From: Chara braunii
Lineage: Eukaryota > Plantae > Charophyceae
Assembly: GCA_003427395.1 (NCBI GenBank)
Contig: BFEA01000031.1
Span: 3,718,452 to 3,782,451 of the forward strand
Direction: 5' to 3'
Length of the DNA stretch: 64,000 nucleotides
The position numbers and the translations under genes are program-made. The notes under the pieces were generated by a model. It had not been told where the DNA came from, did not search any database, and worked only from the letters and a program-made list of their open reading frames with translations. Shown here piece by piece: positions 2,365 to 11,700 of the stretch; positions within the stretch are counted from its first letter, which is position 1, and every line of letters starts with the position of its first letter.

Positions 2365-2510
2365 TCACAGCCCCTCGTTTGTTGTCCTCTTCTCCCTCTC
2401 TGCCTACGGTTTACCAGGCAGCTCTGTTTGACTATATATATCGTCAAATAGAACTGCCCGGTAAACCGTAGGCAGAGAGGGAGAAGAGGACAACAAACGA
2501 GGGGCTGTGA
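2365..2510. repeat. Near-perfect long inverted repeat (68-bp arms, 10-nt loop)
   Basis: Arms 2365-2432 and 2443-2510 differ at 3 positions. The loop is TATATATATC. Confidence 0.95.
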
Positions 2511-2548
2511 CAAACTGTTTCGTCGGAGTTTCACCGACTCATCAGGAG
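2500..2548 (-). ncRNA. Hammerhead-ribozyme-like motif (minimal type I core)
   Basis: Minus strand reads CTGATGA-GTCGG-tgaaact-CCGAC-GAAAC-agttt-GTC^ACAGC. Stem II is perfect, stem III has 3 bp, and the 5' arm of stem I does not pair. Confidence 0.65.
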
Positions 2549-2619
2549 GTATGCAAAAAAAAAAAAGAAAAAAGAAAAACTTCCATTTGTTTGGAGTTCA
2601 CTTGAGCACCAAGTCTTAC

Positions 2620-5700: not shown

Positions 5701-8700
5701 AGCCTTGATTAATGCAGAAGATGGGACAAAACCCTCGGACGCATTGCGCTGACCTGCAATTTGGTCATTTCATAAAATCAAGAGAGAGAAAAAAGACAAA
5801 CACAAGGCATTCAGAGGTTAGAGCGAACACATCATGATCAGTCTGCGATAATTGGCGGATAGTACTGGACAGTGGATACGAACCACACAGAAACCACTTG
5901 AGGTTTTTCGCTCCTGAGCTTTTTCCGTTTGCCTACTGGAAGATTAATCTTGTGCAAATACAGCGCCGTTCATAATCTGGTAGTTAAGAGGCCAAGGGGC
6001 CGGGACCCAATCTGTGCACCCAAACTTTTCGGGTCTGGTAGGAATGACCCATGGGCATTGCAGGCCGTGAGATGTAAAATCATGGCGGCCTCTCTCTCTC
6101 TCTCTCTCTCCCCAACATCTCAAAAGCTCCGCTCAACCAAACGTCTCAAAAGCTCCACTCAATCAAATGCCAGCTGCGATATGCATCCAGTGCCATCCAC
6201 TACATTCCACACAAATTCGAGCCACGGTCGTTAACAGGGAACACATGTCAGAGTGAGATATGATGACTGATCCAAATACAGTCATACTGGCTGAGAGGTT
6301 GGAAGGGAAAATTTAATGTGACCTCTGCTTTTTTACCTACCCAGCAGCGCACACTGACTCTGAGATGCATGTCGGGAAAGCAACCATGAGAAGAAAAAAA
6401 AAAAGCAAGATTCTTTGGAGCAATGTGTAACCACGGCAGATTGAAAAATTAAAAATACAACAATCATATGATGATTATGATCATGTTTGTGTAAAACTGA
6501 CATACGTAAACTCACCTGATGGATAAAACCCATCTGTGAAGTACTGCCGAACAAGTGCCCCAGTCGCGGCCACCACAGGAGAAGACATAGAGGTTCCCTG
6601 ATGGCAAGGAGGAAATTCAGCCCAATGAGACATGGGTGACGTTTGGGCGTTAAATCACGTGCGCCTTTCGTTCGCATTTTCACAAGTCATGATTCAGAAC
6701 ACTTTCACTTTCAACACATGCAGCAAGATCTCTCTGAGTATGTCGCATCCTACACTGTCAGGTGTTGTGCTATCTTTGCACCGACCCAGCATGAACTTGG
6801 ACTTTGGCTACCGTCAGATTCATGATTTCAGCACAAACGAAGCCCTGGCGGCAGTGTATACCTGACCCCTGAAGGAAGGTTGTACTGAGTAGTAGTATGG
6901 TTCATACTACAGCCCACATGGGCGACACGATCACGAGGGCGCAATAAATCAACACCTCGTTGGCGCAAATGGTCTGCTCCCGAGTCCCAACCATCCTCGT
7001 CTCCACGCACATCAACCACATCAGACTTAACGACTTAAATTTGTCTTTTTTGTTATAAGTTAAACCATCCGCTTGATTGAACGCCCGGTCATTATAATAG
7101 CTGTATTTAGGACAACTCTCAGTCCAGGAGCAGCTATAATGACCGGACGTTTTGTTCGGGTGAATAATACTGAATATGGTAGGGCCTCTCTCTTCACACC
7201 GATTAGTACCCGTGCTTGAGAAAACAGCCCCTTAGGAGCTGCTGCCTTTGAAGCCCTTTACAGAAGAAAACGAAAAAGATATCAGGCACACTGCATGTAC
7301 TACTGAATTCTTTCAAACAAGTTTATTACTCTGCCCTCAACGTCCAAAGTAACCGTTTTGTTTCCCTCAAGAAAGCAAAGCCTATAGGCCTGGGGTAATA
7401 CATACATAGATCCTCCTGCCTGGTGATTCATTCAGCAGATCCTCCTGCCTGGTGATTCATTCAGCCCCTCCCATCTCCAAGCTCCCCTTCCCCCCNCCCT
7501 CTCTCTCTCTCCCCTACACCTTCCCCCTCTCCCTCCCCCCTCCTTCCATTTTCCCTCCCCCACACGTGGTCGACAGGGGATGCTATTTTCGGTGAAATTT
7601 TCACTCAAAACTGTCATAAATGATTGTGACATTGAAGGCTGCTGCTTAAAGATCGGCATTCGTGAAGACCAGCCCCAACTAACAAACCAGCCAATGCATG
7701 CACACCACTCGCCGAATCCAAAATGCCAAATGCATCTTCCCACGTTCTACTACACAAAATACATACGCTTACAATTTCCCGAGCTGACAGAATTGATTTT
7801 TAGAACCAAGTTCAACAAACTGAATGAAAAATAACAAGGTGGACACAGGTCCCATGTCATTGATGATTGATCATAAGTTATGCCAAAGGGTCGACAACAA
7901 ATTCAAACTTTTGCAAATTGCCAAATTCTTTCCAAAAAAAATGTATTTGGTGTCTGAAAGATTGAAATCAAGTTCATGTTCCAAGTCTCAGAGAGACAAG
8001 GACACATCAACTGCGCCTGTTGACTTCAGACAGATCAGAGATTCAGAATTATATGGACTGAAAATTGAAATCTGATTCAATGAATATACAAAAAGTTCAG
8101 ACTTGTAAATTTGTTTGGTTCCTAACTTTCCTTCAGTTGTGCTGCACAATGGGCAATGCCATGGTGTAGCATGCAGAGGTACCATTGTGACCCGAATAGA
8201 ACACCCCATTATTAACATGGCATCTGGACTGAAAGCTGTGCCAAATACGGCTATAACGACCGGGCATTTATTCGGGTGGGTAAGTGGAGAACAAACTCCT
8301 CAGAACACATTCAGAGTGCCACACACACAACTAGTCTATGAAAGATGAAAATGGACAAAAGTCAGCGGACAATCTCCTTAATATCGGCAGAAGCTCAAGT
8401 CTAGAGCCAATCTTTCATTCTCACCTGGTCAGACTTCAATCCACAGCCAGTACCGGCATTGGCAGACCAGATTCGCATGCCTCTGTAATATGTGCAAGGC
8501 ACACACATCCAGCCAGCCGCACACACACACACACACACACACACACACACACACACACACACACACACANNNNNNNNNNNNNNNNNNNNNNNNNNNNNNN
8601 NNNNNNNNNNNNNNNNNNNNNNNNNNNNNNNNNNNNNNNNNNNNNNNNNNNNNNNNNNNNNNNNNNNNNNNNNNNNNNNNNNNNNNNNNNNNNNNNNNNN

Positions 8701-11700
8701 NNNNNNNNNNNNNNNNNNNNNNNNNCACACACACACACACACACACACACACACACACACACACACACACACACACACACACACACACACACACACAAAA
8801 CAGATGCATGCCATCAGAAGTTATGAACCTGTTGGAGCTTGCTAACATTTGAATTTTGGACTTATTGTCAGACTGAGTGTGAAACATGCAGCCACACGAC
8901 AGCTGTCCTCACACCCAAGTGACTCAGAGGTGGATTCAGTTGAACTCGTTGAGTTAGAGCAGATTTGACTTGACTTAACCGGCTGAGGGACAAAGGAAGG
9001 TACAATTGACTGTTGAGGGTAAAATACCTAAATCAAACTGGCATTTTTTTTAGCACTTTTTACTAAGTTTTTAATAGTTTTTATTGGTTTTAACTTTTAA
9101 CCCGAAATTGTGAGCTGCTGGAAAATGCTGAGGTGCCGATTTGTTTCTTTTCCGGCACATAGCCCATTCTGGAAACGGAGGCCCAAGAAGTACTGGTGGT
9201 TGAACAAATTTCTGGAAGGAAGCCGAGGAATTCTGTGATACCATCACAAACAACAGCACGGCCGACGATTGGCCGCTTGACCAGGAAACTGCAAACAATA
9301 TGTTTTTGAAAATAATGATTCTTGAAAAATATGAAGGCGCACTATCCCCTTCTTCTTCGTAGTCTTCTTCTTCTTCTTCTTCTTCTTCATCTTCATCTTC
9401 ATCTTCATCTTCATCTTGGCCTTCGTCTTCTTCTTTCCCGCCCCCCTTGCAGCGATGGTTTTCTAACTGCACGCCTACACTGGAGTTGTGGCCCTTGTGG
9501 GGTTACACACACAGAGAGAGAGAGAGAGAGAGAGAGAGAGAGAGAGAGAGAGAGAGAGAGAGAGAGAGAGAGAGAGAGAGAGAGAGAGCATAGACTCCCA
9601 TATGGATCATTGCCATGTGGCACCAACTCCAGACACAGGTTTCCCTGACCCGACGGAGATACTTCGCGGCGTGGCAACAACCATGTTGCGGGGGAAGAAC
9701 GACTTCTTCTTCATCTCCTCCTCCTCTTCTCCTTCTTCTTCTTCTTCTTCTTCCTCTTCTTCTTCTGCAGTACTACTACTAAGTAATACTAACTACCACT
9801 ATGACGACTACTACTACCTACCCCTACTTCTGCTGGTGCTACTACTAAGATTGGATATTTATTATTTACCAATGGGCCTAGTACCTCAGTTGACACACCC
9901 ATGAACTGTTGAAATACAGACCCGATTCTGAATCCAGATTCAATCAGGTGACCGGAATAAAATTTCATTCTAAAACCATTCTGAATTACCTGAGGTCGGT
10001 CCATTCAATGATGATATCTCAAGCCGATTACCTTTATTTATATGTAATAAAAAAAAAATCAAAAAAGGATATTGCATACTCACAGAGCAAAATAAGAGGC
10101 AATGGAATTAAAGAGGACACTCACGGTGCAACAATGTCGGGCTTGATCCTTGCATCCAGGGTCGGCCCCTTGCTCGAGAACGGTGCAAGGAATACATTAT
10201 TTGTGTCATTCCTGCGCGCGTCCATCTTATAAGTTCTGCAGGAGTCACAAACTGGTTGGCAGTACTCCTGGCAGAATTCAAAGCTCTCCTGTGTGCTCAG
10301 ACTCGCACCAACCTGATTCCATAACCCACATCACAAAATTACCACCGAGTCACCGACCCTAACGGCGTCAGAGAGAACGGAATCCGGTTCAGAATCTGAA
10401 GAAGCAGGCGAGCCACAGAGTACACAATTATAGAACAACAATCACAACGCACATTAGCTATACTCGCAGGAGAGCATAGAACGCTACCATCTTTGGCAGA
10501 ATACAAAGCATCGGTCCCTCCTTGTGCATGTATTGGACTGGAAACATAGCTTGCATGCACTCAATATCAGGATGCCCGGACAAAGCACCAGTCTCAGCAT
10601 GCAATCTCAATCATCAGGCGGTCAGCGAATTGAGTAACATCTCCTTCTGCCAAACACAACACAGCTTAATTATCATGAATGTATACAAGCTATGTGTCTG
10701 GTCGGATAGATTCAATGCATGTTGAGGAATACAAATGTATACAAGCTATGTGTCCACAAGCTATGTATACACCTTAATCATGAATGTATACAAGCTATGT
10801 GTCTGGTCGCAGTGGTCGGACAGGTTCGGGGCAAGATGGTAGCCACTGTCGCCAGTTGAATTGCAAAACAAACTGTTACAGTTCCACACACACAAAAAAT
10901 GATCAAGCATGAAAACCAATATATGCATATAATGAGGGATTAGCTGCTGATGAGTCGGCGAAACTCCGACGAAAGTCTGTCACAGCATATCGGTTGTTGT
11001 CCACTACTCGCGGCGCCTCCCACGCTGCCTGCAGTTCACATCATAGTTCTCTATTGCGCACTCCGACGGAAGTCCGTCACAGCATATCGGCTGTTGTCCC
11101 CTTCTCCTGGCGCCTCCTGCAGTGCCTGCGGTTCACCTCATAGTTCTTTAGGGCGATACATAAGTACAAAACAAAAGACCGACGGGCCTGCCGGTCCCTA
11201 TGGTCGGCCAAAAACGCTGCAGGCCAGCCACCCAACCGCCGACGATCTTTTAATAACCAAGTGCAATCAACCCTCAGCGTAAACGAATACAAGCTACATT
11301 TACGGTCAGATACAGTCACGATGAGGATACATTGCATTCAGTGGAAGACGGTAGCTATTAATGTATTGCGAGACATCTTGGCTGCCATCCTAAACCACCG
11401 CTACCTCCAAGCCTCTATTTGCCAGGGCTAGAAAAGAACTCCGCGCCAAGCTTTGCCGAAGCACCAGCGCAACTTGTTTTTTTTATTTGGCTGGCGCCGC
11501 CAGCCATTTTGGTCCGGAGGCGCTCTGCCTCCAAAGAATAAGATATCATAGGTTACAGCACAACTTTAGGAGGTTTTTCGAGCTTGCACGTGAAAGGTAC
11601 TGGTGGTTTAAGGACTTCATTACTACCGTCTTTCCCCTGACACATCGGCCCCTCATCACGAGTGAGTACAAGCTATCTTTCTGGTCCGATCATTGACGCC

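Follow-up and report, generated by a model that had tools for sequence, protein, structure and literature searches.

Two loci sharing a hammerhead core

The window analyzed here is a stretch of 64,000 nt from the charophyte alga Chara braunii (assembly GCA_003427395.1, contig BFEA01000031.1, positions 3,718,452 to 3,782,451 of the forward strand), in which two short loci carry the same hammerhead ribozyme core within repeated sequence. The locus at 2.4 kb (L1) consists of a forward copy on the minus strand and an inverted copy on the plus strand, and the locus at 11 kb (L2) of two tandem copies, L2A and L2B. The four pieces and the (TA)n tracts that border them are listed below by window position.

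2341-2364, no strand: (TA)n target microsatellite that borders the L1 inverted copy on the outside, repeat-masked in the read analysis.
2365-2432, plus strand: L1 inverted copy, 68 nt, a tail alone, 5'-truncated at TC-ACAGC and lying between (TA)8 and (TA)4; the RNA strand bias flips here.
2433-2440, no strand: (TA)4 spacer separating the two L1 3' ends, which stand tail-to-tail; loose ends of the family before 2433 read (TA)n.
2441-2554, minus strand: L1 forward copy, 114 nt, with an upstream remnant GCAUACCUC at 2546-2554, CUGAUGA at 2539-2545, the helix II hairpin at 2522-2538, GAAA at 2518-2521, and a tail at 2441-2517 that ends ..GACGA.
10934-11059, plus strand: L2A, the longest copy, from a divergent subfamily with a 10-nt insertion in the tail; its 5' limit is uncertain (10925-10941). 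It comprises the 13 nt GAGGGAUUAGCUG, CUGAUGA at 10947-10953, helix II at 10954-10970, GAAA at 10971-10974, and a tail running to ..GCGC.
11060-11156, plus strand: L2B, the second copy, head-to-tail with L2A, 5'-truncated in the helix II loop, with GAAA changed to GGAA and a tail ending ..GGCGA, followed by a TA-rich flank.

The core CTGATGA-GTCGG-YGAAACT-CCGAC-GAAA was found exactly at 2518-2545 on the minus strand and at 10947-10974 on the plus strand, the two 28-nt stretches having the same letters except for one loop base. At both places (2545-2504, minus; 10947-10986, plus) the layout is CUGAUGA, a 5-bp hairpin formed by GUCGG and CCGAC around a 7-nt loop, GAAA, a short spacer, and GUC-ACAGC. 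When three mismatches were tolerated, the window gave two matches and 100 shuffled sequences gave none, and the core is thus not a chance occurrence. Neither a motif scan nor a sensitive self-BLAST found a further core copy beyond L1 and L2 in the 64 kb. Homology between the loci begins about 6 nt 5' of CUGAUGA and reaches the tail (2551..2481, minus, against 10941..11009; 83% over 71 nt), and in a four-way alignment the tails of the L1 forward copy, L2A, and L2B share one 3' stop (..GACGA, ..GCGC, and ..GGCGA, respectively), after which the sequence becomes TA-rich.

The two loci are built differently from these units. L1 is a tail-to-tail inverted pair, with arms of 73 nt at 2365-2437 and 2438-2510 that are 95% complementary, (TA)4 at the centre between the copies, and (TA)8 on the flank; its inverted copy begins TC-ACAGC, 2 nt from the GUC^A cleavage site proposed earlier. 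L2 is a head-to-tail tandem (10963-11058 against 11060-11155) with a period of 97 nt and 83% identity, in which the second unit starts within the loop of helix II, without CUGAUGA or the 5' strand of that helix, and reads GGAA where the core has GAAA. The shared core, the common downstream sequence, the inverted repeat starting next to the predicted cut, and the tandem with a partial second core at 11060 had all been reported in a preliminary description of this DNA, and all of them were recovered here. When single copies were folded, they did no better than their shuffles (z from -0.55 to +0.48), helix II alone being consistently predicted. An empty site or a target duplication was sought around L2, with nothing decisive found. 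An assembly gap at 8570-8725 lies within a (CA)n run that continues on either side (8520-8569 and 8726-8797); it is 6 kb from L1 and 2.2 kb from L2, and no part of the findings on the element spans it, nor does any reading frame depend on it.

Next to L1, positions 2201-2340 hold an unrelated and very abundant second repeat, with a summed DNA depth of about 180,000 compared with 11.6 for single-copy sequence, the window copy being about 20% off the majority sequence of its family. This repeat adjoins the same (TA)n tract as L1, so that 2201-2554 can be described as a stack of three insertions at one microsatellite.

Abundance, transcription, and insertion pattern of the family

The family to which L1 belongs was characterized with sequencing data from the same organism, namely one DNA run (X1, as contigs), one probable RNA run (as contigs), and two oligo-dT RNA-seq runs (as raw reads), mapped to 2200-2800 at a likeness of at least 80%. 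Positions 2341-2376 and 2549-2582 were masked in this analysis, and the apparent 5' limit at 2548 is an artefact of the masking. About 20,000 DNA contigs of run X1 fell on 2433-2548, where the summed depth, which indicates a very large family and is not a copy number, reached 3.8 million compared with 11.6 in the single-copy flank. The family is also transcribed, since the oligo-dT runs gave about 3,300 to 7,300 raw reads over the L1 element and 0-2 in the flank. The first mates of the RNA reads showed a strand bias of 3-4 to 1 over L1 that was reversed over the inverted arm, indicating that the libraries are stranded and that one polarity prevails, namely the ribozyme-sense strand if the libraries were made by the usual dUTP method. 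L1 itself is close to the family majority, with common alternative letters at only two positions (2449 and 2480) within 2441-2548.

The 3' end of the family is fixed and its 5' ends are ragged. DNA depth dropped from 3.7 million to 2.8 million and then to about 0.65 million toward the ribozyme end, and the loose ends before 2433 read (TA)n. Many back-joints connected variable points between 2503 and 2537 to the constant position 2433 with a few TA letters in between, in both DNA and RNA runs, and joints between opposite strands were likewise seen in the read data. A frequent 5' end of the family lies at 2531, preceded by (TA)n and near the point at which L2B starts. A fixed 3' end, (TA)n, ragged 5' ends, and stacking together point to target-primed reverse transcription into (TA)n accompanied by loss of 5' sequence. 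According to Craig et al. 2021 (PMC8557442), the insertion signature of Penelope-like elements consists of 5' truncation, partial tandems, inverted copies next to one another, and a bias toward microsatellites. The window family shows these traits: its copies are often cut short at the 5' side and share one 3' end, they stand in partial tandem or as neighboring inverted copies, and their target is a microsatellite. The family is therefore very abundant, transcribed, and non-coding, anchored at (TA)n by its 3' end, ragged at its 5' end, and stacked in tandem and inverted arrangements.

Taking these data together, we consider it fairly probable (about 0.7) that the four pieces are DNA copies, anchored at the 3' end and truncated at the 5' end, of a short, non-coding hammerhead retroelement that is very abundant and inserts into (TA)n in a Penelope-like manner.

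Circular RNA was considered as a source of the back-joints and rejected. All of the listed back-joints except two single contig records were also present in DNA run X1, as was every listed one that had support from RNA raw reads; they thus reflect tandem DNA and are not evidence for circular RNA.

The transcribed L1 hairpin, with its 73-nt arms, could feed small-RNA pathways. On both strands of 2358-2518, more than 12 microRNA (miRNA) covariance models gave sub-threshold matches of 18-63 bits (most of at least 30), all below their gathering thresholds. We rejected miRNA genes at this place, as the matches are far below gathering and reflect the near-perfect inverted repeat. The abundance of the family is a practical nuisance in this respect, because fragments lie in introns and near-perfect hairpins such as 2365-2510 mimic miRNA precursors in covariance-model scans.

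Topology of the hammerhead core

In a type I hammerhead, the strand directly before CUGAUGA pairs with the strand directly after the cut. The preliminary description had likened L1 and L2 to the minimal type I class found in the pseudo-long terminal repeats (pLTRs) of Penelope-like elements and in non-LTR retrozymes, with cleavage at GUC^ACAGC and one defective helix per copy; in such a model, of the Penelope pLTR or animal-retrozyme kind, the cuts would fall at 2509|2508 and 10981|10982 and the ribozymes would act in a tandem or dimer. In register, only one of eight stem I pairs can form in L1 and likewise in L2, and none of the three innermost pairs forms in either. The family majority has the same letters at the stem I positions, without innermost pairing, and no variant reaches 10% anywhere across 2504-2548; the failure of stem I is thus not a private decay of these two copies. 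Missing stem I pairing in the consensus had been named in the preliminary description among the observations that would refute it, and the family majority shows this for stem I. RNA reads showed no pile-up of ends at 2509|2508, and the ratio of RNA to DNA depth was flat across this site. The type I reading with cleavage at GUC^ACAGC is therefore not supported.

Some features had made this class attractive, and we now judge it very unlikely. After GAAA, L1 can form a short closed helix III (A-U, C-G, A-U, G-U) that ends in GUC, resembling the helix III of 1-2 bp in the metazoan type I, or minimal Penelope, motif defined by Cervera and de la Pena 2014 (PMC4209133), where this helix has a small palindromic loop and helix I is open with about 6 bp, but we estimate that a closed mini-helix followed by UH after GAAA would be expected by chance in about one third of sequences, and in L2 helix III contains a G-G mismatch. 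The inverted copy of L1 begins 2 nt from the proposed cut, the GCUG before CUGAUGA in L2 can pair with the CAGC after the site when shifted by one, and the 5' ends of the family cluster loosely at 2510-2521; however, these ends range from 2503 to 2537 and are strongest at 2531, not at 2508, and the neighboring core in L2 lacks CUGAUGA and leaves no dimer partner. In the Rfam search, the type III match was the one retained, and a single weaker match that overlapped it, to a different hammerhead-clan family, was dropped. Of the non-autonomous, ribozyme-processed mobile family proposed in the preliminary description, the association with a hammerhead, the lack of coding sequence, the mobility, and the Penelope-like insertion are upheld, as is the suspected inactivity of these copies, whereas type I processing is not.

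The general hammerhead core is present at both loci, with CUGANGA...GAAA and a closed helix II of 5 bp with G10.1-C11.1 and a 7-nt loop. No complete hammerhead was found in the window at the Rfam gathering threshold or at permissive thresholds, the best scores being 18-22 bits for L1 and 16 bits for L2 compared with a gathering score of 48.5. A small search with the type III model RF00008 aligned L1, as a match cut at its 5' side, to model positions 13-54 (22 bits, E 0.005), and the features of the 3' side of the model are present in L1, namely CUGAUGA, helix II with a UGAAA-type loop, GAAAC, and the 3' strand of helix III; the consensus of RF00008 reads CUGAUGAGuCccUGAaA..gGaCGAAAC.

A search of metagenome, viral, and prokaryote collections with the core pattern returned only unrelated canonical type III hammerheads. 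In three complete ones, from two viral contigs and from Marinobacter pelagius, the 28-nt core CUGAUGA-GUCGGUGAAACUCCGAC-GAAA is exact, and one of them scores 53.6 bits against the gathering 48.5. All three have a 13-nt helix I hairpin directly before CUGAUGA and the cut 14 nt upstream. In L2A, exactly 13 nt separate the TA-rich flank from CUGAUGA, and the first 4 nt of these (GAGG) are complementary to the CCUC found 5' of CUGAUGA in L1, the final CUC of which is confirmed by the family majority.

A sister family, detected in the reads at 2514 (98 DNA contigs and about 320 RNA reads), has the same ribozyme core, continues after GAAACAGU with CUGGCACAGUCAUGC, and then runs into a U-run. Its CUGGCACAGUCAUGC is homologous to the GUCUGUCACAGCAUAU of L2, which suggests that GUC-ACAGC fits the 3' strand of a long helix III rather than a cut site. 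The parts that a type III ribozyme has 5' of CUGAUGA, namely the 5' strand of helix III, the NUH site, and the closed helix I hairpin, are missing from all four copies in the window. We therefore favor the interpretation that the core represents the 3' two-thirds of a type III-like hammerhead, the topology of the intact element being deduced from the partial alignment and from its canonical counterparts. As judged from their sequence, the L1 and L2 pieces are 5'-truncated copies without a cleavage site, dead fragments none of which is predicted to be able to self-cleave.

The phage and bacterial ribozymes with the letter-identical 28 nt (RF00008; L001-L004 and L005) are complete, with a cut site, a 13-nt helix I hairpin, and both strands of helix III, and reach 53.6 bits, whereas the window copies lack these parts. 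The identity probably reflects closeness to the RF00008 consensus and not transfer. The viral hammerheads (L001, 8190-8244, minus; L002, 3461-3488, plus; same contigs as L003 and L004, IMG/VR) are located between a stop codon and the ribosome-binding site of the next gene, and the M. pelagius copy (L005, 542-569, plus) is a complete type III hammerhead whose core matches that of the C. braunii element letter for letter. The tail pattern had no match in viral contigs, and a 110-aa open reading frame (ORF) across L1 (window:2205-2534:-) had no match in two protein collections.

Mobilization of the family and its relatives

Under the reading that we prefer, the RNA of the element would carry a hammerhead near its 5' end, followed by a tail of about 75-85 nt whose 3' end joins (TA)n, and it would be copied from that end by target-primed reverse transcription into (TA)n microsatellites, the enzyme most likely being supplied by hammerhead-bearing Penelope-like (Chlamys) elements of C. 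braunii. Such copying would produce a fixed 3' end, ragged 5' ends, and both head-to-tail and inverted stacks. In the intact ribozyme, the order would be cleavage site, helix I hairpin, CUGAUGA, helix II, GAAA, and the 3' strand of a long helix III. The window copies would begin at or inside helix I and keep CUGAUGA, helix II, GAAA, and the 3' strand only, and GUC^ACAGC, earlier taken for the cut site, would be a piece of the helix III 3' strand. It is our inference in this scheme that the longest copies owe their 5' end to self-cleavage and that the enzyme is Penelope-like.

Several observations weigh against this scheme. No copy with an intact cut site, helix I, and 5' strand of helix III was seen, so that the type III topology rests on a partial alignment and on analogy; the 13 nt of L2A form no hairpin (two of five pairs); RF00008 gives L2 only 16 bits; and the family sequence 5' of CUC-CUGAUGA (2549-2582) was masked in the read analysis. 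A scan of the ten largest ORFs of the window gave no Pfam match to a reverse transcriptase or a GIY-YIG endonuclease, and the link to a Penelope enzyme is thus circumstantial. Moreover, L1 is arranged tail-to-tail, whereas a single Penelope-like insertion event typically gives a head-to-head pair; L1 is more simply explained by two insertions into one (TA)n.

The same evidence can be read in other ways. The pieces could derive from a SINE-like (short interspersed nuclear element) sequence moved by a (TA)n-specific non-LTR retrotransposon, or LINE (long interspersed nuclear element), the hammerhead core being a passenger or a fossil. Anchoring of the 3' end at (TA)n with 5' truncation is the product of any target-primed reverse transcription, and R4-clade LINEs such as Dong target (TA)n. 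The 5' flank of L1 is a T/A homopolymer run, no Penelope-like ORF was found among the ten that were scanned, and the shortened U2 copies and A-rich runs described below may indicate LINE activity in the window. This origin nevertheless seems improbable to us, because hammerheads recur in Penelope-like elements and in the non-autonomous elements derived from them (PMC4209133; bioRxiv 10.64898/2026.07.22.740005), the stacking of tandem and inverted copies is a Penelope-like signature (PMC8557442), and Penelope-like families that bear hammerheads are documented in C. braunii.

It is less easily set aside, though still the lesser possibility, that there is no separate non-autonomous family and that the pieces are the 3' ends left by extreme 5' truncation of an autonomous Penelope-like element bearing a 3' hammerhead, of the Chlamys-2_cBra type. 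Craig et al. (PMC8557442) found a canonical 3' hammerhead ribozyme (3'-HHR) in Chlamys-2_cBra and described 5' truncation as frequent and copy numbers in C. braunii as very high, and the depth over L1 climbs steadily toward the 3' end. However, the L1 forward copy and L2A both stop about 10-20 nt from CUGAUGA, and depth is already about 4-fold lower across the ribozyme, which looks more like a discrete short unit than like the graded truncation of a multi-kb element; no longer copy is present within the 64 kb. The family may thus be a separate non-autonomous element or the cleaved-off or truncated 3' tail of an autonomous Penelope-like element.

The idea that such a family might be undescribed in this lineage was overstated. 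Two Penelope-like subclades in this alga, both with canonical hammerheads, one of these being a 3'-HHR, were reported at very high copy number and with microsatellite targeting by Craig et al. 2021 (PMC8557442), the sole paper in the literature searched that names both C. braunii and hammerheads. These Chlamys/PLE-X elements share with the window pieces the host, the hammerhead, the very high copy number, 5' truncation, partial tandem and inverted insertions, and microsatellite targets (PMC8557442). Compared by description only, they differ in being multi-kb and coding and in targeting (CA)n and (C)n, whereas the window pieces are 68-126 nt long, non-coding, and anchored at (TA)n; the Naiads of animals do target (TA)n (PMC8557442).

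Animal non-LTR retrozymes, argued in a 2026 preprint to derive from Penelope-like pLTRs (bioRxiv 10.64898/2026.07.22.740005), are likewise short non-coding hammerhead elements in tandem copies, plausibly mobilized by Penelope-like elements (see also PMC4209133). Their ribozymes are of type I, in which stem I is open and helix III tiny; each unit of a regular tandem array holds one of them, and circular RNA is produced. In the window family, by contrast, stem I is not formed, the core is type III-like, the tandem consists of two unequally truncated insertions, and the back-joints in RNA are also present in DNA.

Plant LTR retrozymes, which are mobilized by Gypsy LTR elements, offer another comparison. 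As described by Cervera et al. 2016 (PMC4918200), they have in common with the window family a type III-like core, a place in the green lineage, non-autonomy, and transcription. They are far longer, with circular RNAs of 600-1000 nt (PMC5680766), and both of their LTRs contain a hammerhead, accompanied by primer binding site and polypurine tract motifs (PMC5680766, PMC9695139). We rejected an identity with them, since the window copies are 68-126 nt long, lack LTRs, these two motifs, and a direct-repeat pair with two cores, are anchored at (TA)n, and are 5'-truncated. The short non-coding element is best filed as a Penelope-associated hammerhead retroposon, an already known kind of element.

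Within the window itself, these findings are of little consequence, as the copies are predicted to be dead fragments and the type I model does not hold. The family nonetheless deserves a curated description, being a charophyte element that is short, highly expressed, and targeted to microsatellites and that has a type III-like hammerhead. An element of this sort would connect the retrozymes of plants with Penelope-like elements, in line with the origin proposed by de la Pena and Cervera 2017 (PMC5680766), and the family would provide a natural setting in which to ask whether the 5' end of a retrotransposition template is defined by self-cleavage. A bolder and only tentative proposal is that the family is a currently active non-LTR retrozyme of a streptophyte alga. 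An intact type III hammerhead, set in a long hairpin of helix III, would then cleave the transcript; a Penelope-like enzyme would use the 3' product, which starts at helix I, as the template for copying into (TA)n, and L2A would begin exactly at the cut. If true, the family would supply the missing link between two groups, the LTR retrozymes with type III ribozymes in flowering plants and the type I retrozymes derived from Penelope elements in animals.

Other features of the window were recorded alongside. A 33-nt motif, ATCATGAATGTATACAAGCTATGTGTCTGGTCG, occurs five times around L2 (10672-10809, 11276-11308, and 11655-11687), two of the occurrences being identical. The 64 kb also hold two U2-like small nuclear RNA sequences (5146-5266 and 39975-40096, both plus) and two U6-like ones (21654-21761 and 36193-36302, both minus), with Rfam scores, in this order, of 63.8, 103.5, 80.3, and 60.6 bits. 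The 3' half of the model is missing from both U2-like copies, A-rich runs come directly after them, and they may be retro-pseudogenes. The longest ORF of the window (32675-34396, minus, 574 aa) contains both GAPDH domains, Gp_dh_N and Gp_dh_C.

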